A DNA stretch of 64,000 nt from Podarcis vaucheri (Eukaryota), in the NCBI GenBank assembly GCA_965113315.1, contig OZ220375.1, one strand, 5' to 3'. Shown here piece after piece: positions 1,729-57,400 of the stretch. Numbering within the stretch: the stretch's first letter is position 1; the number at the start of each line of letters is the position of its first letter. Below the pieces are notes generated by a model. That model was not told the DNA's origin, made no database searches, and saw nothing but the letters and a program-made list of their open reading frames with translations. Made by a program: the position numbers and the translations under genes.

Positions 1729-2523
1729 AAGCCTCTCCTCCTTACAGAGGGGAGGAGTTATGAGCAGGAGCCATTTCCCACGTTGGCAGGGGGCGTTCCA
1801 GCCCCTCCCCAGCTGGCCTGTCTCCTGCACCACGCCCCCAGGTAGCCAAGCAATCAGGTGGAGGCTTGGGGTGGGGTTTAGCTGCTCAAATGCGGCCGCA
1901 GCAGCACTTCCTTTTCATTCTGCTGCTGGTTTTTGTCAGATCACCCACCCACCCTCCCTTTAGTTCATTGCTTGGTTCTTGACATTGCTACGGACTTGTG
2001 GTTGGTCACCTTGGTTGCCCAAGGGGCCTGGTAGGAATTTTTATCCGACTGGCAAATTGGCACCGGCCACTTAGTTTTTTGCCTACCTCGTAGCAAATTG
2101 TCACAACTTTTAGGTATTGGCGGTTAGGCATTGGAATATGTTTGTGTATTGGAGGGCTGGGTGTGGTCATTGCCTCCCCCTCCACTTTATGGTTATTCCG
2201 GTAAAGGAATCCAGTGGTCGTGGATCCTGTCTGATGCCCTTGCTGGTGGCTAGGGCCATGGCACAACCCCAGGTGACATCAGGAGGAGCTTTCAGTTATA
2301 TTTGCATCAACAGGTTGCTCCCACTGGTGATTAACCCTTGTTAGACTCACCCCCCCCCCCCGAGAGGGTGGAGTCACACTCTGTTGTTTTATCCAGTGCC
2401 TAAGCCAATACCTCTCACATGCTGTAATCAATAAAGGTGTGGCCTTTTTTAGCCCATTAACCTAATATACTGTGTCCATGTGTCTTTCTTATCCCCAAGC
2501 AGGTGGCAGGTCTTTGAATCACA
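1729..2523 (+). mobile_element. ORF-less ~0.8 kb insertion, probable non-autonomous relative of Ngaro/DIRS tyrosine-recombinase retroelements
   Basis: Absent at the paralogous site (~14360-14385). No clear TSD. Shares a structured motif and the AATAAAG(G/T)TGTGGCC 3' signal with the YR element at 39930-46372. Confidence 0.65.
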
Positions 2524-3110
2524 ACTTCAAATGCCAGTAGCACTCTGGGGAAGTGATCATCATCCCATCATTGTTCAAATTACTGTTTTGCATCCTCTGA
2601 CAGAATAGATTTTCAGAGGCCAATAACAAGATCAACAATCAGCATCTTAAAAGGCTATATAATCTTCATATGGTTCACAACTGAATCCTAGCACAGGAAG
2701 AGCTTTGCTAATCTTTTGTGTGACTGTTTCCACTTCATATGTCAACCTATAACCCCAGCAGCTGATTCAACTATACTTTTTTAGAATAAAATTCAAGAAA
2801 TGTATTCTAGAGTATCTCTGCTTCTCATCCCTTTTTTGTCGGCTGATGATTTTCCACTTGTCCATTTCTTCCTGTGAAAAACTGGACCTCTTTAATTAGG
2901 CATGTGAAAAGGGAGCAATTATTAACTTTGCTACCAGGTTACTCGTGCAGAGCTAATCTAAGAATTTCAGCTATAAAACTGTGTGTACCAACAGAATCAT
3001 TACCATTCAAGGGAGGCTGTAACAAAATTTACAATACTAACACATTGTGCTGCACAATAAATAGTATTGATAGAAATCCAATAGTTGGAAACACAGAGAT
3101 CTATGCTGGG

Positions 3111-6100
3111 ATGGAAAACATTTTCAACAGGATCTGGGTGATGGTGATGTTGCTACTTGTACTCCTGTGCCAAAGTGTATGCATGACAAACCTGATTAAT
3201 TGCACCATGTTTGATGATCGTCTCCTGATTCCTCATGGATTTTATCAACCAGGAGACCTCCTCATTGGAGGGATTGTTTCTCAGGTCTTATTCCTCTATA
3301 ATAACCTTTCTTTCATGGAACAGCCTGCAAAGATCTTGATTAATGAACCCATGTAAAGCATCATCTTTTCTCTCTCTCTCTCTCTTTCTCTCCTCTGCCC
3401 CTTTATTTATCTCTCTGCCTGTAATATAGGCTCTTCCTGAGCCCATAGTGACTCAGAATGCAACATTAAGAAAAATTGTGCTAAAGTAAAATCATTTAGC
3501 TTTTAGTGTGAGTGTATCTTGCCAAGGCTATTCCCATTTTATACAAGGATAAGCTCAGAATGATCTATATCTCTGTTGAGAATATGTTTGTGTTATTTGT
3601 GTTTGGAAATACAATCTGGTCTTGCACATACTATTTGAATTTGAAAGTGTGCACACACATTATTGTACAGGGACATGCTTTTAAAAATATTATTTTGGAG
3701 TTGGCCCTATGCTGGGTCTGTATAGATTATATTTAAAATATAGATGAATTCATGGAAGCTTGTAGGCTCTCCTTTGTACTTTCCACATGCAATATCTTTT
3801 CTCATTTCACTTCTTTTGAGTATATACACTGCAACTGAATTAAAATATATCTGACCCCTGATATCATAAATGATCCAGATCAGTTGCCTGACTTACTTGT
3901 TATTATGTAGATTTAATGTTTGATTTAATCTGCTGCTAAATAGATTTTCAATAATAAATGTACTAAATGAAATAAATGTGTATGGAGAAGGCAAAAGATA
4001 CTCCTATTCTGCTTCTAAGAAGAAGTGGAGAGAGCAATTTGATCAACAATTAGATTGTCTCCAAACTTTTGCTCCCTTTAGACTACCACTTCTCCTGAGT
4101 AGTTAGTACTTACTGAGTTCTACTCAAAGTAGACTCATTAAAATGAAAAAAGTCCTATCTGAGTTGTGCCCATTAATTCAGTGGGTCTATTCTGACTAAT
4201 TTTGGTTCCTCCTCGGCAGTTTTATACTACATTTAACTTTTGAAATGATGTCAATAAATGAATATTATAAATTCAACAAATTGTTATTGTTGTTGTTATT
4301 TGATTAAAGAGCCTGTAACTCTAATTGCAGTTCAGTGCCTAAGAACTACCAGCATATCATGGCTTTCGCATTTGCTGTAAAAGAGATAAATGAGAATCTC
4401 AACATTTTATCAAATGTTTCCCTGGGGTTCCACATCCTCAATAGCTACTACACTGCAGGAATGACTTATAAGGCCACACTGAACCTGCTTTCCACACAAC
4501 AGAGGTTTGTCACCAACTTCAAGTGTCACCACCTGAGCAAGCTGATAGCTCTCATTGGAGGATGTATCTCTGAGATCTCTGCCAACGTAGCCATTATTTC
4601 TGCAATCCACAAAATTCCACAGGTAAGTTGTATGCATGAGAGTATAGGGATTCAACAACTTTGCGCATTGCCTTGATTTCTGTAAAACAGATGACTTCTT
4701 GTGATATTTTATTTAGCAATTCTTTAGCACATTCTCTTGAATAGCTTAGATGAAACTGGGAAGCACTAATAGGCAGATGACAGAAAACAGGGAGTGATAG
4801 TAGCCAGAGCAACTTAAACCCCCAATTTGTCATGCTTGGAGAGGGGTGTTGGATGGAACAGAGGTTTCCTTCCAGCTAGTGTTGGTTAGACAAAAAATAT
4901 GGTGTTTTTTGCATATGGACAAATTCCTCAATGCAACAAACTGAGGAGGGGGCTATAAAACAATGTGTCTGTTATTTGACATCATATGAACTCAAATTTA
5001 TCTACAGTTTATTTCAATATAACTGTTACATGAAAATCTCATACCAACTAGGTTCTACATTTTGGAGGTGTGATTGATAAAACTAAATAAAAATAAAAAA
5101 ATTCCTTCCAGTAGCACCTTAAAGACCAACTAAGTTAGTTCTTGGTATGAGCTTTCATGTGCATGCACACTTCTTCAGATACACTGAAACAGAAGTTGCC
5201 AGATCCTTCTATATACTGAGAAGGTGGGGAGGGGTATTACTCAGAAGGGTGGTGGGAATGGGAGATTGGCAGGTAGCTGAGATGAGCCTGTTGACGACTC
5301 TTAACGGCTGTAATAGGTCTTACAGGAAAGGGCAAGGGGTGAGAAGGTGAGAAATGGCTTAATCATGTATAATGAGATAAGAATCCAATGTCTTTGTTCA
5401 GACCAGGTCTCTCCATGGTTTTAAGTTTGGTAACTGTGTCTAAAACTCCATACTTCTGTTAGAAGCTAGTGAATGCCCAATTTCAACTAAAGCATGGTGG
5501 GCTGCCCTAAAACATTGGCTCAGGATTGTAGTGTTTGATCTAGGGAAGGGTCTGTATCAACACCTGACCAGTGAGGAGTTTGTCAGCAATTGGCAGAAAA
5601 CCATGGCAAAAAAGCCACCTCTATTGGTCTTTCACACACACACCCCAAACTCTATTACCTGGGTTGTGAAGGTGCCCTAAAGACATTAAAGCAAAGATTA
5701 TGGGATAGAGGATTCCTAGGTAAGATCCTCCCTCTATTGTGTGGGCAGGTAATCCCTCCCCTACCTGGCCTGGTCTCCTTGGCAACGCTTCCCCCAGGTG
5801 GGATTGGACAACTCACTGAGGTAGGTGGAGACCTCCAGGTATCACACCTGAGGGAAGGCAAAGCCAAGCCTATGCTGTTGGAGCCGCTCCAGATCTAGGG
5901 GCTGCACGCGTCCACGCAAAGGGTGCCCCCCATTTTAAGTGGGGAGCGGTCATTATGGGATAATACACACAGTGACTTGAAATCCTGATCACACAGAGTC
6001 TGTAGTCCGTTGGCAGTAGGAATACAATATGGGCATGTCTTAAAGTTAACACCTTACATTAAAAACCTGGCAGTACCAAATTAGCGAAGGTTATTCACCA

Positions 6101-13551: not shown

Positions 13552-14961
13552 GCATCGTGGAGAATGAAAATGGTGCTGATGTGGTTGATCCCAGCACTTC
13601 TCCTCTCAGTGCTCCTTAAAAGGAATTACGGGGTGCATCTAATAACTAGCAAGGTGGGTAGGTGTTCCACATTAGCTACCGTTGTAGCTGGAAATGAACT
13701 TTGCCCGAAAACGTAGTAGGGCCACTGTCATTCCCACCATGGAGTTACACAGACCATGAAAACAAGTTTGCAATGGGCCCAGAACTCCAGTTGCTTACTC
13801 TGTTCCTTGCTCCTAGATACATATACTCAGTCAATTTATATGCTGTAAGCTCCATGGGGCTGAGATTTTGTCTGCTGTATCTTGCACACTGTTATTACTG
13901 CATGAATGAATTCTTTTTTTCAATGACAAAATAATATTAATATCAATAACTTTGACAGACAATAATTGCAATTGTTCTGCTAAAGGAACTGGAGGAGGTT
14001 ATTGATTTTTTTTTAGTTCTTTTTCTTGTTTTTATTATTTATTTTGTGTTTTTGATCTTAAATTTTATGTTGTGAACCACCTTGAGATCTATGTATGAAG
14101 GGTGATATACACATTTAATAAACAAAACAAAACAATATATAATATACTGTTTTACATGAAAACACTCACCCTCAGATTTGCCAGGCAATAACTCTGCATT
14201 AAACACACTTATACCAAATCTGAGTGGCTAGTGTGTGAACTTAGTTCTGGGCAGAAGCAACCTGCACCAATAAAGCCATGTGCCATGTATTTCTAAATCT
14301 CCCTAAAATATAAGGAAAAATAGTTGTAGGATTAGGAGGAGGCTATTCCTTGCAGTTTTGTGGTATATTGTGTAACTTCAAATGCCAATAGCACTCTGGG
14401 GAAGTGATCATCATCCCATCATTGTGCAAATTACTGTTTTGCATCCTCTGACCGAATAGACTTTCAGAGGCCAATAACAAGATCAACAATCAGCATCTTA
14501 AAAGGCTATATAATCTTCATATGGTTCACAACTGAATCCTAGCAAAGGAAGAGCTTTGCTAATCTTTTATGTGACTGTTTCCACTTCATATGTCAACCTA
14601 TAATCCCAGCAGCTGATTCAACTATACTTTTTTAGAATAAAATTCAAGAAATGTATTCTAGAGTATCTCTGCTTCTCATCCCTTTTTTATCGGCTGATGA
14701 TTTTCCACTTGTCCATTTCTTCCTGTGAAAAACTGGACCTCTTCAATTAGGCATGTGAAAAGGGAGCAATTATTAACTTTGCTACCAGGTTACTCGTGCA
14801 GAGCTAATCTAAGAATTTCAGCTATAAAACTGTGTGTACCAACAGAATCATTACCATTCAAGGGAGGCTGTAACAAAATTTACAATACTAACACATTGTG
14901 CTGCACAATAAATAGTATTGATAGAAATCCAATAGTTGGAAACACAGAGATCTATGCTGGG

Positions 14962-38470: not shown

Positions 38471-41400
38471 CATTGTTGTTACTAAAGGCTCAGTGGCATA
38501 GGTACTGAAGGTGCCATTCAACAGCTTTGGTTAGTGGTCCAGCTATAAAATCCCATATGGCTATGGAGAACCTGGCTGCAGTTGTAGGCCAAGCACACTA
38601 ATATGCCTAAGGAAGGAGTGTTTCATTACAATAAGACCAGGTGACCAGTGCCACTGCTATGATTCTACAATGCAGCTGTTTTACTCTTCTGAAAATAATC
38701 TTTTATTATTATTATTTCAGCTCACTTATGGAACATTTTTGCCATCATGGGATGAGAGAATAATTTTCCCCTTTTTGTACCATATGGTCCCAAATGAAGC
38801 CCACCAGTACATAGGAGCTGTTCGGTTATTTCAGCATTTTGGATGGACATGGGTTGGGCTCTTGTCTGTGGACAATGACAAAGGGGACAGATTCCTACAG
38901 ACAATGCTGCCCCTGCTTTCTGAGAATGGAATCTGTTCTGCATTCGTAATTAGACTACCACAATGGAGTTTTGTGGACCAACTGATAGAGTTGTTTCTGC
39001 AGCATGCGCAAAGCTATGTAACCATCATTCAAGGAAGAGCCAATGCATTATTTGTTTATGGAGAAAACCCATCTTTTCGGGTTTTGAGAATATTGCTATT
39101 TCTAGCACGCTTCACTCAGTTGCCTCCCCTTGAGAAAGTATGGATTATTACATCTCACTGGGATTTCACATCAATGTCTTTTCAAAAGAATTGGGAAATG
39201 CAAACTTTCCATGGCTCCTTATCCTTCACTGTTCACTCAGATCAGCCATTAGGATTCCAAAAATTCATTCAAACATTAAATCCTTCCTGGTCGAAAGGAG
39301 ATGGTTTTATCCAGGACTTCTGGGAACAGGCCTTCAGCTGTTCATTAAAAATGCTCATGGAGGATGAGGAGAGTGCCTGTACTGGAGAGGAAAAGCTGGA
39401 GAGCATTCCTGGAATATTATTTGAAATGAAAATGACAGGTCACAGCTACAGTATCTACAATGCTGTCTATGCTGTTGCATATGCTTTGCAAGCCATGTAC
39501 AAATCCACCTCAAAGCATAGAAGTTTGGATAAAAGGAACAGATTGTTATTACAGAATGTGCAACCATGGCAGGTAATGATAATTCAGTGTTTGATTGTTT
39601 TTTAAAAGGTAAGCTAGCTTTTAATACAGAGGTAAAAGGAACTGACAGGAAGCAGTGTACTAAAGTTGTTTTCATGTTATTGTTCTTGTATATGTTAATC
39701 CAGCTCCAATTATAGAATGTTATGCGGAAGTGGGTATTTCTAGATTTGCAACTGTCCTTAAGTAGGAATGAAAATCCAATATTTACCTATTTATTTATTT
39801 ATTTATTAGAAATCAGGCAAACAAGCAGAGATTAAAGGCTCTATATGCCTCCATTAAATAAAAATTCACCCAGATTCAGTTGTTGCAGTTGATGAATCCA
39901 TATTGATCAATAGTATTGGTCTCATTATGTTGCGTGTTGAGTCACAGTAGCCCCCCAATAATTCACACTTCACACATCAATTTTTTGTTTAAGGTTTTTG
40001 GCATAATTTTGGCCACAACTTTATTCAAATACAAAAATGTGAGTGGTTGCTTAGGCACTGGTTCCGACTATCTGTCCTTGCCCTCAGGGACAGTGCTGGC
40101 CTTCCGGATACCAGCGGAAGCCAGCGTGGGAAACAAGTATTGGGTGAGAAATAAAGCTGGGCACCAGACCATTACTTCTCACCCTCATGTTCCTGTGGGG
40201 CTTGCACGGCCCAAGTCCGACTCCGGGGACAAGGACGAAAGAATGGCAAGCCCCTGGATTTCCTTTAACGGAATTCCCATTCGCATCATTTGGAGGGGTA
40301 GGCACTTACCCCTCCAAGCACCAATTTAACCAGTGCCTAACCGCCATGGAGCCCTCAGCTCACCGCCAAACCACTCACAGCCCCAACCAAGACCTCAGCT
40401 TGGTCACCACCGCACCTATCCAATCCTCATTCCCTGAAGCGGAAAGGTGCATGCCATCAGCTTGGAAAAAGGATGGCCTCTCAAAAAGAATCTCGGGGTG
40501 GGAAATTGCATCGCCACCAGCTCCAAAACTTTTTTGACCACAGCAGAATTGATGCGTTTTCGGGCCTTCAGTGGCAGCCGGGCAACGACTGCCCTTCCAA
40601 ACGCAGCGTTGCAAAAGCTTTGACCAAAAAAAAATTTCGCTGTCGGCACCATTGCACGCAGCGTCTCCAGGTCACCCAAAATTGCAGCACGTAGTGACAA
40701 ACAGTCCATGGGCACCAGGTCGTTCTCACCAATCTGCACCACAATAGCAGCTGGCGGCCCCTCCAGGGGCAACTGCCTCCGGATACTTGGCAGGAACTCC
40801 GACCAGCGCATCCCACGTCTGGACAGCCAAGACAAGCGAATATGTGGAGGAAAGCCGAAATCTGGACCCAATCCAGATTGCCGTGCTGCGATGCCAGCCC
40901 AATGGACGATACTGTGCCCCACAATCCAAACACGGGTCACCGCTAAACCTGATAAATAAGATGAAACAAACAAAAATTGTAAGACACCAATAATGTTAAC
41001 GAACATAATCTTTGAATGCATTCGATTTCCAACGACCTGTATTTTATTTCCACTGCCTTATTAACATGCTTTCCGGCCTTCTTGGTGGTACGTTTGTCTA
41101 GGCATTGGTTCCCGACTAGCTGCACCTGACCTCAGCAGGGCAGCACTGACGACTCGGCCCCACCATATCGTCAGTACCAGCAAACATTGTGGGGGAGCAT
41201 AGAATCCCAAGGCAATCGCATCCCGCCAGGTGTCGTTCCCCATAGGGGAAAGATGCACCCCATCTGCCCTAAAGAGGGCAATAGCCTTGAAGAAAATTAG
41301 GAGGGTGCAATATTACAGAACCACCTAAAGCAAGGACCTATTTTATTTTATTTGTTATTTTATTTACTTTATTTATTTTATTCTATTATCCACCGCCTTA

Positions 41401-44400
41401 TTAACATGCTTTCTGGCCTGCTCGGTGGTAGTTTGTCTAGGCATTGGCTCCCGACTAGCTGCACCTGACCTCAGCAGGGCAGCACTGACGACTGGGCCCC
41501 ACCATATCGTCAGTTCCAGTAAACAGCATGGGGGAGGAATGAACCAGGATCAGACTCAAGCTCACCCCAAATGCTCCCAGGGATTCTTGCATGGCCCTAC
41601 CCCTCAAAAGGGGTCGACAAAAGCATGGCAAATCCTTGGATTCCCTTAATGGAACATCTTTGCGCATTGGAGGGGACAGGTGCTCCAACCCCCCCTCCAG
41701 ACCACCTTGAACCAATGCCTTAAATTATTTTGAGTCCAGGGAGAGCTGCCATCAACTCAATCCAAGCCCTCTTGCATGCAGGAATGCAAACTTATGCTGG
41801 AGGAAGACAGCAAACATTCTCGCCCAGCTGTACCACCAGCACTGCGGGAGGACCTGCACAGGTCACACTTGACCGCACCAAAGGAAGGACGTCCTCCCAT
41901 CTGGACATCCTCCCATCTGGACATCCAGCCTATGTTCACATGGGCAGGAAGACTGAGATGACGCCCCAGTCCAAACCCGTCAACATGCTTGCCAGCCTAG
42001 TGTACAATGCTGTGGCCCAAATGTGCACAGCTGCTCCTATGAAAAAAGGAAACAACAGACAAGCATCAGCACAGACATCATTGTGACACTTCCTGATATA
42101 ACCCTTGTCAGTGTCAGACTTCCAATGACCCGTATTCACAATCCTGTCTACAGACAGGCCCCCAGTGTGCAGCCGTTGCAGCAGCACCTAATCGTAAGGA
42201 ATGAGGAGTGTTCAGCGGTAAGCAAGCCGCAGGCTGTAATAACTGGTGCACGACGTAAGCACATTGATGCCAGGCTAACGGGAACCCATTTTCATGCACT
42301 AGGAGCGGGCCAGCCCCCAGGGAATAAAAAGCCAAATATTCTGTTATCCATAACCGGGCAAGGGCCCTCCTCACCTGTGGCGGGAAGCCTGATTGTGGCA
42401 CTCCTGCCCACTAAGTCTGTTTTAGAGTTACCAGCTCTAATGACAAGCTCCAAAGGATAAGGAAAAGTCCTGAAGCAATAAGCCTCCAGACTCTCAGCCC
42501 CGTGCTGGCTCCAACAACCATTACCCCAACCCTCAGTGCGAAAATGCAATGGACTACTGAAAGGAGTCTCACCTTGATCTTTAACCCGCAGACAAGTTTT
42601 AACTTGTTGCAGATACTGCATAGGTAAAATTGACCGACTCCCTGCCCACTGTCCTATGAGGTTGGAGCCTATTCCAACCTTCCAAGGCCCTGCGCGCTGC
42701 AAACTTTATACAAGGGTCTCTGAAAAAATAAAGCTTCAATGTAACAGACATTGCAGCGGACTGAATTCGGATAGTTATAACCGCATGCCCAATCTGCAGC
42801 AGGTGGACCAAATACTGCAGGATCTGCTCAGAGGATGGGGGCAAATTCTTCCGAATGGCCAAGAACTGCCAGCTTAAGGCTAAGAAAACCATCCAGGCCT
42901 TCCCATAAGAGGTAAAAGCAGAAGGGGAAATGGAAGCTGCCGCTCTCTGAAATTACTAATTGTTGTCAAAATGCCACAAGACTGGAAAAGTCTGGCAATA
43001 GCTGAGTCTGGAGCCCAGGATCTGAAGCGCTTCATCTGAAAATCGGATAGTGTCAGCGTAATTTGGAGAGTAGAAAGCACAATATTAAACCTTAAGTGGC
43101 GCAGCTCGAAAGCATGAGCGGAGGGGCAGAGACTGTGTTACAGCATGAGGACTGTTTTGCCAAGACGCTCACCACCACCTGGTTATCAGACCAAAAGCAG
43201 ATCCGATGGTCACTGAACTCCTCGGGCCACATGAACTGCTACTACAATGGGGAAAACTCAAGAAAAGTTATGTCACATGATTGCCTCACCACACCAGGCT
43301 TGAGGCCATAGCTTTGCACACCAGCAGCCCTTGAAATAAAACCAAAGGGCAAAGATCCAGCAGCACCAGCATGAACCTGAAAATCCCTGAGCGGGTTCAA
43401 GGTATCCTGCCATGGCGAACTACTATTGCATACATTCAGGAATTGCTACCATCGCCTGATATCTGCCTTCACCACACTTGGTAGGCATACACAAAGGTAA
43501 GGGGACCTCTGTCAGCATCGCCCTTGAGCCAGTGCCACCAACTGGACTCATCCACTTCAGCCCCAACTGGGCTAGGCGAGCTGGGTAGCACTTCCAGAGA
43601 CCACCTTCTGCACAGGGACAGGTCAAAGTGCTGTGGACTCACAGCTTAAGAGTTGTGAGCACCGGATTCACTCCCACAAGAAGACAGTCGTCGCACAGCA
43701 GAGTACAGCAGAGTATATAAACAACTCGGAGAGCAGCTCTGTAGAATATCTTCTTTATTCTATCTACAACTATACAAACTATATACAGAGCTTAATAGGT
43801 CTAAGTATAAATAAATGCTGCACTGCACTGAGTGTCTGCAGCTGCCCTTAGCAGCAACCTTATCTCTACACATGATCTCTAACACTCAGTCTGTCTCCCT
43901 CTCCGACACTGACTGACTGACTGACTTGGTGCTGGAGCAGAATAAGTAGAGACCAGAACACGCCTCCTCCTTTCTGGAGAATCAGCAGACTCCTCAGGAG
44001 ATTCTTGGATATGGGAGGGGTGAAATCTAGGCAGCCTGGCCTAGTGGGAAGATTAGTTAAGTGACCCAGCAAGATCGGATCTGGTGAAGCATCACTTGCT
44101 ACAGAGGAAGTATTACAAATTAACTTCCTTCAAGGCAGACAGCTTCTCCATAGCCAAGTGGTATGTTTTAGCAACGATATCCAACTGGATCCCTAAATAA
44201 AATGGGAATATGGGCAAATGGTATTGAGCTATTGCTTGCCAGCTTCCAGCCCCCGCTTGGGCAGGGGGCATCTTGTGCTGCCATCATGATATGTAAATTT
44301 ACAGGGCCGATGCTGGCCTGAACCCCTAAAGAAGTCCCAACCAAGCTGCCGCCAAGCCAGCTTCCTTTTCAGACACACACTCTGTGCAATGCAAAAACAC

Positions 44401-47400
44401 ACTCCGTGCAGTGCACACACTCTCCATGCAATGCAACTACACACTCCGTGCAATGCAAAAAAAAAAGCACACTCTGTGCAATGCAACTACACACTACATG
44501 CAATGCACACACAAACCCTCCGTGCAATGCAACTACACACCCCGTGCAATGCAAAACACACTCCCTGCAATGCACACACCCTTCATGCAATGCAACTACA
44601 CTCCATGCAATGCAACTACACACTCTGTGCACTGCACACCCTCTGTTCAATGCAACTACATATTCCGTGCCATGCACACACACTCCGTGCAATGCAAAAA
44701 CAAAACAAAACAACACACTCTGTGCAATACAACTACACCCTCCATGCAATGCAGCTACACACTCCCTGCAATGCACACACCCTCCATGCAATGCAACTAC
44801 ACTCCATGCAATGCAACTACACACTCCGTGCACTGCACACCCTCTGTTCAATGCAACTACATATTCCGTGCCATGCACACACACTCCGTGCAATGCAAAA
44901 ACAAAACAAAACAACACACTCTGTGCAATACAACTACACCCTCCATGCAATGCAGCTACACACTCCCTGCAATGCAACTACACTCCATGCAATGCAACTA
45001 CACACTCCGTGCACTGCACACCCTCTGTTCAATGCGACAACAAACTCCGTGCAATGCAACTACACACTCCGTGCAATGCGCACACCCTCCGTGCAATGCA
45101 ACTGCAAATCTCCTAGCAATGCAATGCAATTGCAGCCCGTGCAGCGCCGTGCTCTGCAACGCACGCAAAGGTGCTTTCTCCCAGTTGCATATTGCAAACA
45201 TGGCACCCGTTACATCCCTCGCAGTGAGGTAACCACCAAAAGGACTTAAGTGTCCAGGTAGAGCAATAGGGGAGCATGCAGCTGTCCCATACAGGGACCA
45301 ATCCTGCAACCTAGGCATTACCGGCACTATCCGCTGACCCAGTGAAACCAATTCTTCATGGACCACATGGGGACACTATTGAGGCCGGAAACACTTACAG
45401 GCCATCGAATTCTAGGGCAAAGCCCTAGGGTCACCTGCTAGGCCAGGCATAAATGTTTCCAGTGAAATAGCAGAGTTGAGGTAGCCCACAGCTTGTCCAG
45501 GTACCCCTGCTTGCCCTTTTAGAGGGAAGCACCCCTTCAAGAAACCCAAAGTTCTTTTATCACAAATGGGCCGAACTACCCAGCAACAGAATAGCCCATA
45601 AGGAGCAGTTTGTTTTGTTTTGTTATAACAATGGCTAAGAGGGGTATATGAACCCTGTCTCCCAGGTCCTAGTCCTACACTTTAGCCACTAATCCACAAT
45701 GGCGCATCTCTAAAATGGCAGTCGCCACTATCAGGGCAAAACAAACTTAAAGAAAATAAACTTGTTCAGAAACAGCATAGTTCAAGAGCATATACAGAGT
45801 GCTCATAGTCCTTGGAGGCACAGGGAGCCATAAAGCCAACCTTTGGGGATACTATAAACGAAAGTGATACCAGCTAAGCTGGGAACAGCCCTGACTAGCC
45901 CCACAATTTCAACAAGAGAAATGGGGGAAACCTTTTTGCGAAAGAAAGCCCCTAACGGGGGCTCTCTCACTATTGGGAAAGGCAAGCCACAGATACAGGG
46001 AGAATCTTCCTACGGGGCAGGGTAAGGGGTGGGGTGGGAAATTGAACAGGAAAGGGGGGTAATTAAATTATTTAAGGGACTAGAGAGGATTAAAAAGAAG
46101 GGGAAAATAAAGAAATAAAGAAATGTAACCAGACAATGAGAAGATTGTCCAAGTGCTCCATGTGATCCGATGCAAAACGGCCAAGAGGCCGTGCCAACGT
46201 CTGGCCCCTGTATATATAGACTCTGACCCCTCCTCTGAATTGGCAACAATCAAAACACCCCAGCAACCCAGTTTAACCATTTAAATGGTCGGGATTCAAC
46301 TAAATTTGCCTAGTCACTGGAGGGTGGCCTGTTCCCAACCGCAACACGTGCTCTCTGCTAGGGAGAACACGCTATGTAGTCCATTTCAAAATTATTCACA
46401 ATAAGAAACTCACATCACAACAAATGAAAGGAAATAACAGCTTGGTGGATAAGTCCCCACAGGTAGAGAGGAATACAACCTAGTGCTAAATTGGAGTTTG
46501 CACAAGGTCATCTCCCCCCTTCCCCCTCTTCTCCCTCTGTGTTTTCAGCAAACCTATTAGACGGACTCCTCCAACCCTCCAGAGAAGATTTAGGAGGTGC
46601 AGCTGAGAGTAGAGGGGGGAGAGTCCCATTGAAAAAGCAGATCTCTATCTCAATTGCCTTCCTCTGGTAAAAAAATAGTAGTTGTAAGATAGTTCTTTGT
46701 GAATCTCATTGAAATCATTTAAAACATAGTTACCCCTGTCTTCATATTCATTTTGAATCTAGGTTCATCATTTACTAAGAAGCATCATCTTCAATAACAG
46801 TGTTGGAGACACTATCCACTTTAATGAAAATAGAGAATTAGTTGCATTCTTTGATATTACAAACTGGATGGTGTTCCCCAATGGCTCAGTAATGAGAGTA
46901 AAAGTTGGAAGGCTAGAACCTCAGGCTCCTTCAGGTGATGAATTGACCATGAATTATGACCAGATTGTGTGGCATCAAAGCTTTAATCAGGTAAGACATA
47001 ATATTATTAACATTTATCTTTTGTTAAATTTGTAAACCTCCCCTCATTAATAGAAATCAGGACAGTTTGCAGAATAAAAATACAAGATAAATACTCAAAA
47101 TGGATAATAAAACCAAAATCTAAACAAAACAATAACAACCCTCTCCATTATTATATAATATATAATTATGATGTTAATTTGAAACTTTGCAAAAGTAGTC
47201 TGTACCTATGTCCAGTTGCTGGTGAGACACAATCTACATACAGGTGAAACTCAGAAAATTAGAATATAGTGGAAAAGTTCATTAAAAGATGAAACTAATA
47301 TATGAGACAGACTCATGATATGCAAAGTGAGATATGGCAAGCCTTTATTTGTTATAATTGTGATGATCATGGCATATAGCTGATGAAAACTGCAAATTGA

Positions 47401-51493: not shown

Positions 51494-54400
51494 ATGGTAA
51501 CCTATTGTGGGAGGCAAAATTTTCTCACCAGGATCATGCTGGCGGTCGTGTTGCTGCTTGCACTGTTGTGTCAAACTGCATCCAAAACACATTCCATTAA
51601 CTGCAGCATATATGATGATCCCCTCCCTATTCCTCATAACTTTTATAAACCAGGTGATATAATCATTGGGCAGATTGTTTCCCAGGTATTCTTAAATTAC
51701 GATAACCTCTCTTTCACGGAACAGCCTATGCAGACATTGATTGATGAACCTATGTAAGTCATAATTTCTTTACTCTCTCTCATTCTATGTTCAGGTCACA
51801 CTAACTGAGAAGATATCTATAATGCAATGCTGTGCTGTAAGAAATTGTTAACTTTATTCCATGAGAAAAGGGGAACCTGCAAACTTCCAACTGTAAATCA
51901 TGGGATGAGGTGGGGGATAGAAAGTAATTTGAGAATTTGGCCTATAGCCACCATACAAATAATCAATTATAAACACTTGGGAAGAAATGTTGCAAATATT
52001 TCAGAGGCAGTGGCAATCACCCTCTTTGTCCCCAAATTTAGCAGGATGTTTTACACAAACTAGGTTTGGTTTGGAACAATGTGGATGGAGCCTGATTTAT
52101 CTTGGATATCTCTTGAATCTATATTAATGATCTGGCCTCATATCCAGGCTTCATTCAAATGCAATACATACCTCAAATATACATACATTAAGTTAGATTC
52201 CCTGAACCCATTAAGCCCCAGTTAGTCATGTCCATTAATTTCAAATGACCTACTATGGCTGATTTTGTATGGAATCAGCATGAAGATAAGCACACATAGA
52301 GAGACACTTTGGATTGTTGTGGTTGCCAATGAGGGCATGTGATTGAATATGGAGAATAGGTTTGTGGAACAATATATTAACATTCAGAATGATCCCAGTG
52401 CATTTAAAGAGCATGGCTATTCAGGGGGAATATGTCTACTTCAGATGTCATTTTTTTTAAAAAAATATCTATTGTCTTCTATGATCCCATGTTTTGCCTC
52501 AGCCTTGCAAGGATTAAGATGATGAAGAAGATAGCAGATCCTTGTTGTCATTGCTGCGGTCATTTTGTTAAACAGCTGCAATCCTTATTACAGTTCAGTG
52601 CCTAAGAACTACCAGCATATTCTGGCTCTAGCATTTGCTGTCAAAGAGATCAATGAGAACCCCACAATCTTGGCAAACATCTCTCTTGGCTTCCACATCC
52701 TCAATAGCTACTTCAATGCAAAGATGACCTACAAGGCCACTCTGAGCCTCCTTTCCACACAACAAAGATTTGTCCCCAACTTCAGCTGTCACAACCAAAA
52801 CAATATGATAGCACTCATTGGAGAATGTTTCTCTGAGATCTCTGCTAACATTGAAGTGATTTTGGCAAGCAAGAAGACTCCTCAGGTATGTTTAGTGCAT
52901 GAAGGCATGGAGATTTTGCAATTGTGATATGCCCTCCTGATTTCAAGAACACATTACGTAAAGTTTCTTTTGATGATTTGGTGACAAAATTGGTTAAATA
53001 CTTGATGGTGATACCAATAGGTGGACTTATAGTACAATACAACAGGATTCTAAAGGAGTGATTATCAATTTCTGCTCTTTAAATGAAGTGAGGTTTTGAG
53101 GTGTGTGGTGCAGGGTTCTGTCTTGCACCAAGAAGACTTCAGCATTTTCTTCAAATACTTACATGAAGAAATGGAAGGAATCCCAATGTCATCCACTAGG
53201 GAAGAATGGTTAAGACCTCAGTAGGCAAGAATAAAATTGAAATTCTGCTGGTGAAGTATTGGATTTGCTGAATTGTTATCTGGTTGCAATAATAGACTGG
53301 ATGAGGGCCAAAAAAGAAAATATTAATTCAGACAAGAATGTGTTTCTGCTACTAGGTGGGCATGTTGTATGGCTGATTGATATGCAGCCCACTCTTAAAG
53401 AGACACAACTCTGCCTCTGAAAGAGTGGGCCCATAGTTTGGTGCTCATCCTTGATCATGATTCAGGCCTCATCATGGGACTGAAATTGCCTCGGTTGCGC
53501 TGGTTGATGATCTCTTGCAGGCTAGGGACAAATGTTGAAGCTGTTTCCTATTTCTGCTGTATATCTCAACGGCTTTTGAGACCATCGATCATGACATCCT
53601 TCTGGACCGTCTTGAGGAGCTGGGAGCCGGGGGCACTGTTTATACAGTGGTTCCGCTCCTTTCTCCTGAACTTCATATAGATATTAAAAAGCATGGGGGA
53701 AAGGATGGAACCCTGAGGCACCCCACAAGTGAGAGCCCTAGGGTCTGAACACTCATCCCCCAACACCACTTTCTGGACAAGGCCCAGGAGAAAGGAACAG
53801 AACCACTGTATGTGCCCAGAGCTCCCAGCCCCTCTAGACGGTCCAAAGGATGTCATGATCAATGGTCTCAAAAGCCGTTGAGATATACAGCAGAAATAGG
53901 AAACAGCTTCAACCTTTGTCCCTGAATCCTGATTGGAAGGGATCCAAATGGTCCGCATCCTCCAGGCATGCTTGGAGTTGTTCAGCAACCACCCGCTCAA
54001 TCACCTTGCCCAAGAATGGAAGATTTGAGACTGGGCAATAGTTGGCCATATTGGCCGGGTCTAAAGATTTTTTTTAAGAAGCAGTTTAATGACTGCCTCT
54101 TTCAGCGGGTCTGGGAAGGCTCCCTCGCAGAGGGAAGCATTCACCACCCCACAGAGCCCATCACCCAGCCCTTCCTGGCTTGCTTTTATCAACCAGGATG
54201 GACAAGGATCAAGGAGACAGGTGGCTGCTTTCACTCGTCGAAGCAGCCTGTCCACATCCTCGGAGGTAACAGATTGAAATTGATCCCATATAACATGACC
54301 ACATAACCAGACAGAGGGACTTCTCAGTAGTGGCGCCTTCCCTGTGGAACACCCTTCCATCAGATGTCAAGGAAATAAACAACTATCAGGTTTTTAGAAG

Positions 54401-57400
54401 ACATCTGAAGGCAACCCTGTTTGAAGTTTTATTCTGTTTTTAATGTTCAGTTGAAAGCCGCCCAAAGTAGCTGGGGAAACCCAGACANNNNNNNNNNNNN
54501 NNNNNNNNNNNNNNNNNNNNNNNNNNNNNNNNNNNNNNNNNNNNNNNNNNNNNNNNNNNNNNNNNNNNNNNNNNNNNNNNNNNNNNNNNNNNNNNNNNNN
54601 NNNNNNNNNNNNNNNNNNNNNNNNNNNNNNNNNNNNAAAAGGCTCAGTGGCATAGGTACTGAAGAGTGCCATTCAACAGTTTTGGTTAGTGGTCCAGCTA
54701 TAAAAACCCATATGGCTATGGAGAACCTGGCTGCAGTTGTAGGCCAAGCACACTTATATGCCTAAGGAACGGGTATTTCATTACAATAAGACCAGGTGAC
54801 CGGTGCCAGTGCTATGATTCTACAATGTAGCTGTTTTCCTCACCTGAAAATAACCCCTTTAATTTTTATTTCAGCTCACTTATGGAACATTTTTGCCATC
54901 ACAGGATGAGAGAATAATTTCCCCTTTTTTGTACCATATGGTCCCAAACGAAGCCCACCAGTACATGGGAGCTGTTCAGTTATTTCAGCATTTTGGATGG
55001 ACATGGGTTGGGCTCTCGTCTGTGGACAATGACAAAGGGGACAGATTCCTACAGACAATGCTGCCTTTGCTTTCTGAGAATGACATCTGCTATGCTTTTA
55101 TTATAAGATTACCACGATGGAGTTACGTAGAAGAGCTCATACAGTTGCTTCTACAACACTGGAACAGTTATGCAATTATCATTCAAAAAAAAGCCAACAC
55201 ATTTTTTGTACATGGAGAAAACCCATCCTTTCGAGTTTTGAGAATATTGCTATTTCTAGCACATTTCACTGAGTTGCCTCCTCTTGAGAAAGTATGGATT
55301 ATTACATCTCACTGGGATTTCACATCAATGTCTCTTCAAAAGAATTGGGAAATGCAAACTTTCCATGGCTCCTTATCCTTCAGTGTTCACTCAGATCAGC
55401 CATTAGGATTCCAAGAATTCATTCAAACATTAAATCCTTCCTGGTCGAAGGGAGATGGTTTTATCCAGGACTTCTGGGAACAGGCCTTCAGCTGTTCATT
55501 AAAAATGCTCATGGAGAATGAGGAGAGTGCCTGTACTGGAGAGGAACAGCTGGAGAGCATTCCTGGAATATTATTTGAAATGAAAATGACAGGTCACAGC
55601 TACAGTATCTACAATGCTGTCTATGCTGTTGCACATGCTTTGCAAGCCATGTACAAATCCACCTCAAGGCGTAGAAGTTTGGATAAAAGGAACAGATTGT
55701 TATTACAGAATGTGCAACCATGGCAGGTAATGATAATTCAGTGTTTGATTGTTTTTTAAAAGGTAAGCTAGCTTTTAATACAGAGGTAAAAGGAACTGTT
55801 TCAGAAAACAGTTTACTAAAGTTGTTTTCATGTTATTGTTCTTGTATATGTTAATCCAGCTCCAATTACAGAACGTTACTTGGAAGTGGGTATTTCTGGA
55901 TTTGCAACTGCCTTTAGGTAGGAATGAAAATCCAATATTTACTTATTTATTTATTAGAAAGCAGGCAAACAAGCAGAGATTAACAGCTCCATATGTCTCC
56001 ATTAAACAAAAATTCACTCAGATTCTTATGTTGTATTTTATGAACCCGTATTGATCAATAGTGTTGCTCTCATAATGATGTAATCCATTTCAAAATTATT
56101 TGCAATAAGAAACTCACATTAAAGCAAATGAAAGGAAATGACAGCTTGGTGGATAGGCCTCCACGTGTAGAGAGGAATTTAACCTAGTGCTAAATTGGAG
56201 TGTGCACAAGGTCATCTCCCTCCTACCCCCTCTTCTCTCTCTGCATTTTATGTAAACCTGTTTGACAGACTCCTCCAACCTGTGATGGCTTGTGAGCGCC
56301 TTCCGCAAGAAATGCCTCTGCTCACTCAGAGATACATATATACATCCTTTATTTTACATATGTACAAGCAGCACACATAATCATGCATCTGAATCCTCCG
56401 GCTCAGATTCTTGGAGTGCCTTATGGCCACCCCTTCTCCAGTAGAAAAGGCGTGAAATTCTCATGTGATGTCTCTGTCCCCTCCTCTTTAACACTTTCCT
56501 TTCCTGGGCAGATGGAACAGGCATTGCTTCACTGTCCGTGCCAGAGCTTCCTGTGCGGTGTTGAGGCTCTGTTCCAACATCTGTGAGTCGTTCCTCCTCA
56601 CTTTCCCTTCTTTCCTCCACCGTCACTTTCTGCCCCCCTTCCTCTGCCTGTCTCTCCTCTTCCCCTTCATTCTCCATCAATACCATGACACAACCCTCCA
56701 GAGAAAATTTAGGAGGTGCAGCTGAGTGAAGATGGTCCCATTGCAAAAGCAGATCTCTCTCTCAATTACTTTCCTACGGTAAAAAATAGTAGCTGTAAGA
56801 TAGCTCTTTGTGAATGTCATTAAAATAATTTAAAACATAGTTATCCTATTTTTCATATTCATTTTGAATCTAGGTTCATCATTTACTAAGGAACATCATA
56901 TTCAATAACAGTGTTGGAGACACGATCCACTTTAATGAAAATAGAGAATTAGTTGCAGGCTTTGATATTACAAACTGGATGATGTTCCCCAATGGCTCAG
57001 TGGTCAGAGTAAAAGTTGGAAGGCTAGAATCTCAGGCTCCTTCAGGTGATGAATTAACCATGAATTATGACCAGATTGTGTGGCATCAAAGCTTTAATCA
57101 GGTAAGACATAATATTATTATCATTAACCTGTTATTAAATTTGTATAGCTCCCCTCATCCATAGAACTCAAGACAGTTTGCAGAATAAAAATACAAGATA
57201 AATACACAAAATTGATAATAAAACAAAAAACTAACAATAACACCCCTTTCTATTATTATATAATAATTATGTAATTATTTTGAACTGTGTAAAAGTAATC
57301 TGTAGCTATGTCCAGTTGCTGGTGAAACAAAATCTACCTATAGTGAACTTGTAAATTACCATATGTACCTCTTCCCTTAAGAAAGGGGTATTCTGCTTAC

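Follow-up and report, generated by a model that had tools for sequence, protein, structure and literature searches.

A segment of about 300 nucleotides near the beginning of the window analyzed here, a stretch of 64,000 nucleotides (64 kb) from Podarcis vaucheri, raises the question of whether it encodes a conserved multi-branched RNA structure and, if so, what such an RNA might do. The sequence-only reading that drew attention to it had proposed a structure-selected, cis-acting RNA outside the described families, possibly a replication or packaging signal, a translation element or an unknown ribozyme. The window holds six tandem class-C (V2R-like) receptor gene units, spaced 9 to 16 kb apart and 80 to 99% identical to one another. 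Our preferred reading, to which as a whole, including the role in cDNA synthesis proposed below, we assign a probability of roughly 0.45, is that the segment represents a structured RNA domain of ~290 to 300 nucleotides carried by lacertid Ngaro-like elements, located in their 3' untranslated or repeat-B region 15 to 25 nucleotides before an AATAAA. Searches with nhmmer, using each copy as the query, find three full copies in the 64 kb and no others, as well as a copy of the 3' half.

2112-2413, plus strand: folded domain, copy A (nhmmer; E-value 1.7e-14 to copy B and 3e-6 to copy C)
40049-40345, minus strand: folded domain, copy B, with helices P1 to P7; the best-folding copy (minimum free energy, MFE, -139.9 kcal/mol)
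41439-41722, minus strand: folded domain, copy C, with helices P1 to P7 and a truncated hydrolase remnant upstream
41060-41225, minus strand: 3'-half copy of the folded domain (nhmmer), inside direct repeat B2

The three full copies are only ~50-57% identical in pairwise comparisons, with B and C ~55% identical. Folded separately, B and C nonetheless give a common plan, in which a closing stem (P1) encloses six hairpins (P2 to P7). In both copies P2 contains an invariant GGAGGG/CCCUCC helix and P3 has the form UUCC-N6-GGAA followed by UCCA, with UUCC-NNUAAR-GGAAUCCA as the P3 pattern across copies. P4 is a two-tier hairpin with a conserved GGGCCRUG sequence, and P5 is a long hairpin. P6 and P7 follow, and then a short junction, UAGUCGG, leads into the 3' strand of P1. 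Compared with dinucleotide shuffles, the MFE z-scores are -6.9 for B, -3.3 for C and -2.4 for A. By-eye inspection revealed no conserved pseudoknot in the form of a pairing between the P3 loop and a junction that is common to the three copies.

Copy A shares P1 through P5 with this plan, and has one large distal hairpin in place of P6 and P7.

2112-2135 pairing with 2392-2413, plus strand: P1 of copy A
2150-2184, plus strand: P2 of copy A
2196-2209, plus strand: P3 of copy A
2214-2270, plus strand: P4 of copy A
2277-2329, plus strand: P5 of copy A
2344-2375, plus strand: distal hairpin of copy A

The helices that had been claimed for copy A are present as described. The closing stem consists of 10 bp and 12 bp separated by a GG bulge and includes one U-G pair, and inside it lie TGGAGGG/CCCTCCA (2150-2184), TTCC-GGTAAA-GGAA (2196-2209) and GACTC...GAGTC (2344-2375). 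Their recurrence on the minus strand also holds, since B and C contain the closing stem core TTAGGCAYTGG/CCARTGCCTAA, the GGAGGG/CCCTCC helix and the TTCC-N6-GGAA hairpin. The GG bulge is retained in copy B, as had been stated, and is missing from copy C. The GACTC/GAGTC hairpin is found in copy A only, at the place taken by P6 and P7 in the other two copies.

Several features of copy A depart from the B and C plan. Its minimum-energy fold fuses P4 and P5, and a fold with the homologous P4 forced into place, similar to that of B and C, lies 4.3 kcal/mol above the optimum. P4 of copy A shows four both-sided changes and two mismatches relative to B. A covariance model built from B and C matches copy A at 2141-2270, its best non-training match in the window (16.6 bits, rough E-value 0.02), and a model of the 3' half of B does not recognize the 3' half of copy A. 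Because copy A is homologous to B and yet has a 3' half that the B model misses, we regard it as a clearly homologous family member, as judged by sequence similarity, with a variant 3' part.

Of the two insertions that carry the domain in the window, the larger contains copies B and C.

39933-46373, minus strand: composite, degraded Ngaro-like insertion with copies B and C, delimited by a paralogous empty site
42114-42401, minus strand: tyrosine-recombinase-like ORF fragment with an HSLRLGAAT motif, from Atlas feature matches
41379-41536, minus strand: direct repeat B1, 91% identical to B2
41040-41197, minus strand: direct repeat B2, 91% identical to B1, holding a partial copy of the domain
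40416-41021, minus strand: SGNH/GDSL hydrolase ORF with a frameshifted C-terminal part, ending ~70 nucleotides upstream of copy B
40020-40025, minus strand: AATAAA, 24 nucleotides past copy B, read from the sequence

A paralogous repeat has the two flanks of this insertion (39012-39932 and 46374-46576) joined directly at 56078-56080, with an overlap of 0 to 3 nucleotides between filled and empty sites and no target-site duplication. The hydrolase ORF shares 47 to 67% identity with lizard proteins, those of Podarcis and unnamed ones, and PF13472 is found in several of them. The recombinase-like fragment has Atlas feature scores of 0.88 to 0.93 to Phage_integrase, DUF3504 and DUF3435 clusters, which have the standing of leads only, and Pfam and PHROGs scans of the fragment gave no match. 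Six internal ORF pieces scanned against the same two collections, in which reverse transcriptase and RNase H were sought, also lack a family match. The region from 42900 to 46000 contains only short broken ORFs, an array of 22/42-nucleotide tandem repeats and other debris. B1 and B2 are 159-nucleotide repeats on either side of a 181-nucleotide spacer. B1 overlaps the 3' third of copy C, from the 3' side of P5 through the whole of P6 and P7 to the P1 3' strand, and a tail of 60 nucleotides, and the spacer has no match at the 5' end of the large element that could represent an A1 repeat.

Ngaro elements, which belong to the DIRS order, have split direct repeats in the arrangement A1-B1-A2-B2 and optionally an SGNH hydrolase ORF (PMC9210276, PMC7192593). 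The elements in the window resemble them in that a recombinase-like region precedes the hydrolase ORF, B1 and B2 flank a spacer, target-site duplications are lacking and the domain lies in or overlaps B; the B1-spacer-B2 series of the element with copy C is the right-hand arrangement described for Ngaro (PMC9210276). The host elements are Ngaro-like, as indicated by the SGNH hydrolase ORF, the recombinase-like fragment, the B1/B2 repeats and the lack of target duplication.

The 39933-46373 insertion (minus strand) appears as a tandem of two hydrolase-plus-domain modules of different families. The first comprises the truncated hydrolase, copy C and B1-spacer-B2, and the second comprises a hydrolase, copy B and the true 3' terminus. 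This composite could have arisen when one element inserted into the end of a second.

Copy A resides in a much smaller unit.

1730-2522, plus strand: ORF-less, Ngaro-like unit of 793 bp, consisting of a 382-nucleotide 5' part, the folded domain and a 109-nucleotide tail
2430-2435, plus strand: AATAAA, a putative poly(A) signal as judged from the sequence, 17 nucleotides past the closing stem of copy A

In a 98%-identical tandem paralogue the corresponding flanks (1008-1729 and 2523-3396) adjoin each other at 14374/14375, so that this copy provides an empty site; the filled and empty sites overlap by 0 to 1 nucleotide, with no target-site duplication. The termini of the unit resemble those of the large block, starting with AGC..TCTCC.TA.CAGAG and ending with ..TCA(A)CAC, and no internal repeats were found within 1730-2522. 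Since the unit is discrete and ORF-less, has block-like termini and is without internal repeats, it is one of two things, a solo repeat unit of the A-B type or a derivative that is non-autonomous. Since the very recent duplication that produced the 98%-identical receptor-gene copies, it has either been inserted or been lost by precise removal, and the pair of filled and empty sites (1730-2522 versus 14374-14375) could mean recent activity or recombinase-mediated excision. In DNA contigs the domain is 5 to 10 times more common than the hydrolase ORF, an excess to be expected if each element has two copies and solo units add more; by itself it is no proof of trans-mobilization.

An RNA role depends on whether the fold, and not some other property of the sequence, has been conserved. 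A coding explanation is ruled out, because the sense strand of copy A has no ORF of at least 80 amino acids and there are many gaps between the copies. Under a neutral explanation, the hairpins would go back to an ancestor with many local inverted repeats, and the folds would be alike through shared descent and GC-rich composition. Such an explanation draws on the fact that there are three copies only, that the elements in the window are degraded, and that the blind permutation test is not significant for copy A (p = 0.03-0.5). A full-copy alignment with n = 3 has too few sequences for covariation power of the R-scape type.

Copies B and C are, however, divergent enough that an unconstrained descendant at ~55% identity should have lost the fold. 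In a blind test, the two copies were aligned pairwise with MAFFT, and residues of C were permuted 2000 times among columns that share the same B letter. In this alignment 66 of 100 B pairs are kept in C, compared with 51.5 ± 4.1 under the null, and 16 of the kept pairs have changed on both sides, compared with 7.0. In the B-to-C direction, 0 of 2000 permutations attained the figure observed for kept pairs or that for both-sided changes, and the reverse direction gave p = 0.002 and 0.006. The sequence of P6 is nearly wholly different in B and C, and is nevertheless paired in each, which also argues against neutrality.

Covariance models lead to a similar picture, with the reservation that alignments fitted to a model favor the structure. 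A 5'-half model derived from B alone retrieves C with 33.9 bits (E-value 8e-6). In the fitted alignment 96% of cells are paired and there are 8 both-sided changes, as opposed to 0 or 1 when partners are slid by 1 to 3 columns. The 3'-half model of B retrieves C weakly (14.2 bits), and aligns P6 and P7 with 11 further both-sided changes. Over both halves, copy C on the fitted alignment has 19 both-sided changes, 10 G-U pairs and 0 A-C pairs.

Variants of the family were collected from thousands of public lizard DNA contigs and from RNA reads with at least 80% likeness, and were mapped onto the folds. In the public lizard contigs, pair 17/292 in P1 changes from C-G to U-A with shares of 0.83 and 0.90, and pair 177/197 in P5 changes from A-U to G-C with shares of 0.59 and 0.61, where the shares on the two sides are unlinked across contigs. 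In the RNA reads of one run the two P5 changes do co-occur (19 of 19 and 18 of 19). Among the 14 best-supported variant positions, taken from the best 40 of 325 variant rows, seven are unpaired, and a family-wide A>G change creates a U95-G143 pair in C. Two of the 14 would disrupt a pair, unless a partner outside the best 40 of 325 rows varies as well. On the whole, the family-wide variants avoid pair breakage, which speaks against neutrality.

Compensatory base changes beyond those attributable to relatedness are therefore found between B and C and, family-wide, at two pairs. The claim that the RNA is selected for its structure holds for B versus C, where these changes exceed the permutation null, but is weak for copy A alone; the case for selection is carried mainly by B, C and the family-wide data, to which copy A by itself adds weakly. 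The P1 core, P2 and P3 are sequence-invariant among the copies and so are uninformative on pairing either way. Because two strongly diverged copies keep the fold, the domain is probably a selected RNA signal, and we consider it quite likely that the fold is maintained by selection on the sense transcript of the element. Neutral inheritance is correspondingly improbable in light of the compensatory changes.

The strand that folds is probably, though not certainly, the sense one, which runs in the direction of the ORFs. For the three copies the MFE of the sense strand is always lower than that of the antisense strand (-141.1 versus -137.2, -123.7 versus -108.6 and -115.5 versus -114.1). We abandoned folding z-scores as a guide to the strand, since the antisense values (-7.1, -3.7 and -3.7) equal or better those of the sense strand. 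The ratio of G-U to A-C on the blind alignment was also set aside, because 51:37 is not decisive. The well-aligned helices contain G-U pairs, at which the complement would have A-C mismatches.

These observations bear on a role at the level of DNA, in which the fold would form in single-stranded cDNA, or the inverted repeats and palindromic boxes would serve as binding sites for proteins, such as the tyrosine recombinase or transcription factors that act in the terminal repeat. The good antisense folds agree with such a role, and so does the overlap of the domain with the B repeat. The most conserved parts, namely the P1 core, P2 and P3, do not vary in sequence, a property expected of a DNA site, and DIRS-1 uses single-stranded cDNA intermediates (PMC7192593). 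Compensatory changes in P4 through P7, however, are not expected of double-stranded DNA sites. A G-U pair in the sense strand becomes an A-C mismatch in minus-strand cDNA, as would apply to the P1 U-G pair of copy A and to U95-G143 in C, and the 10 G-U pairs versus 0 A-C pairs in the fitted alignment of C point in the same direction. Moreover, arms that are 260 nucleotides apart are unlike known tyrosine-recombinase core sites. We regard a DNA-level role as improbable, mostly on account of the compensatory changes.

RNA reads with 80 to 95% likeness cover the domain and not the hydrolase ORF, and apparently derive mostly from one paralogue. In one bulk RNA run (X24), reads over 40050-40349 are ~92% alike, their first mates lie almost only on the plus strand, and they depart into unrelated sequence upstream of 40315. 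These reads probably come from one expressed paralogue that is embedded in another transcript. At copy B the RNA reads show no pile-up of ends after the AATAAA; they continue through it, with loose ends at 39992-39995.

The domain does not correspond to a described Rfam family, in agreement with the original proposal. An Rfam 15 scan of the 64 kb returned nothing at gathering level, and over the three copies the best matches by E-value score 10 to 18 bits against cut-offs of 40 to 80. As to the functions suggested at the outset, none of the known self-cleaving families in Rfam 15 (hammerhead, HDV-like, twister, hatchet, pistol, VS and hairpin) matches, and the position of the domain downstream of the last ORF argues against a role in translation initiation.

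A scan of viral contigs for the motif gave 48 matches, and a 24-base gapped pattern gave 3 matches over metagenome contigs; none of these has further similarity by nhmmer, and both collections are without lizard DNA. All were treated as chance matches and not as relatives, because 3 is about the number expected by a rough estimate.

In the papers covered by full-text literature searches, which did not extend to the original account of Ngaro (Goodwin and Poulter 2004), no folded RNA is reported for these elements. The possibility that the domain is simply a described Ngaro terminal-repeat feature, against which the sequence-only reading had measured itself, is borne out in part: the domain is within repeat B, but the fold itself is undescribed in the papers searched, which present the repeats merely as repeats, with no conserved multi-helix fold. 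The domain is thus a candidate for a new RNA family in Rfam.

We know of no primer or initiation signal for elements of the DIRS order. For DIRS-1, whose primer for reverse transcription is not known, the literature offers only a proposed short hairpin at the 3' end (PMC7192593). The DIRS-1 internal complementary region (ICR) with the proposed 3' hairpin and the lizard domain are alike in that both would be cis-acting, near the 3' end and tied to starting or completing cDNA (PMC7192593). However, the ICR acts by complementarity to the termini and the hairpin has 14 nucleotides (PMC7192593), whereas the lizard domain comprises 300 nucleotides and seven helices, and is without evident complementarity to the termini.

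A different parallel comes from non-LTR retrotransposons. In R2 and other stringent elements of this type, the 3' untranslated RNA is bound by the element's own reverse transcriptase. As in the lizard domain, a fold of a few hundred nucleotides is located at the 3' end of the element RNA, and its structure is kept while the sequence drifts. In contrast to the recombinase-using lizard element, R2-type elements rely on target-primed reverse transcription and terminate with the structure or with a tail, whereas the lizard unit runs ~90 to 110 nucleotides beyond the AATAAA. There is no sequence similarity, as the Rfam scan was negative.

Our favored account, whose odds we place slightly short of even, is that the structured Ngaro 3' domain acts in the initiation or transfer of cDNA. 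The domain would be a cis-acting platform near the 3' end of the element transcript, through which a complex of the element's reverse transcriptase and Gag might recognize its own RNA. Bound there, the complex would start, or transfer, minus-strand cDNA synthesis. The sequence-invariant P2 (GGAGGG/CCCUCC) and P3 might be contact sites, and the covarying helices P4 through P7 might be a scaffold. The more specific proposal, that this is the cis-acting replication signal so far missing for tyrosine-recombinase retrotransposons, responsible for template choice and for the start or transfer of first-strand cDNA, is possible but somewhat doubtful. If true, it would account for a possible mobilization in trans of ORF-less A-B units such as 1730-2522.

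A signal required at the extreme 3' end of the RNA fits poorly with one aspect of the element that carries copy C, in which the complete domain is at the internal B1 and the terminal B2 has only the 3' half. This arrangement better suits an element that works independently of position, and the same selected RNA domain could instead promote the nuclear export or the stability of the unspliced element RNA, through host factors that it recruits in place of a reverse transcriptase encoded by the element. By analogy, models for such a function would be the constitutive transport element (CTE) of simian type-D retroviruses, the RTE of mouse IAP and the hepadnaviral PRE.

The CTE of MPMV/SRV and the IAP RTE lie between the last ORF and the 3' repeat or poly(A) signal, and their function depends on binding of host NXF1/RBM15. 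The IAP RTE is a multi-stem-loop domain of ~230 nucleotides with a terminal closing stem, and is present in many genomic copies. The lizard domain, with ~300 nucleotides, multiple hairpins and a long closing stem, would resemble the IAP RTE, and is comparable to both elements in its 3' UTR position and general shape. Its place between the last ORF and the poly(A) signal, which such elements also occupy, would put it in every transcript. An export function fits the position of the domain equally as well as the cDNA-initiation account. No host-factor motif was identified in the domain. We consider an export or stability function the main rival to the cDNA account, but rather unlikely.

On our preferred reading of a structured Ngaro 3' domain that acts on cDNA, the domain offers a concrete, testable object for the question of how reverse transcription starts in the DIRS order, in that its shape is kept across families and it is located in the terminal repeat region. 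It also permits a search for an RNA export element of the retroviral type in multi-ORF Ngaro-like elements.

Several additional features occur within the degraded large element or elsewhere in the window. At 46308-46320 (minus strand), ~55 nucleotides from the 5' end of the large element, the sequence CCAGTGACTAGGC agrees with the P1 3' strand, CCAGTGCCTAAGC, in 11 of 13 letters. By chance, about three matches this good would be expected per window; if real, the match could allow pairing between the 5' and 3' regions of the transcript. A TATA-like box, TCTATATATACAGGGG, at 46215-46235 (minus strand) is ~140 nucleotides from the same 5' end and is a candidate internal promoter; it is absent from the 5' part of the 793-bp unit. 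The tandem array in the degraded element spans 44375-45124 and has 22/42-nucleotide units, a higher-order period of 181 to 201 nucleotides and the consensus ACACACTCCGTGCAATGCAA... A stretch at 45640-45720 (minus strand), GTGGCTAAAGTGTAGGACTAGGACCTGGGAGACAGGGTTCATATACC, resembles the head of a tRNA-derived SINE. Outside the insertion, the window contains a run of N at 54488-54636 and a long inverted repeat at 53524-53923.
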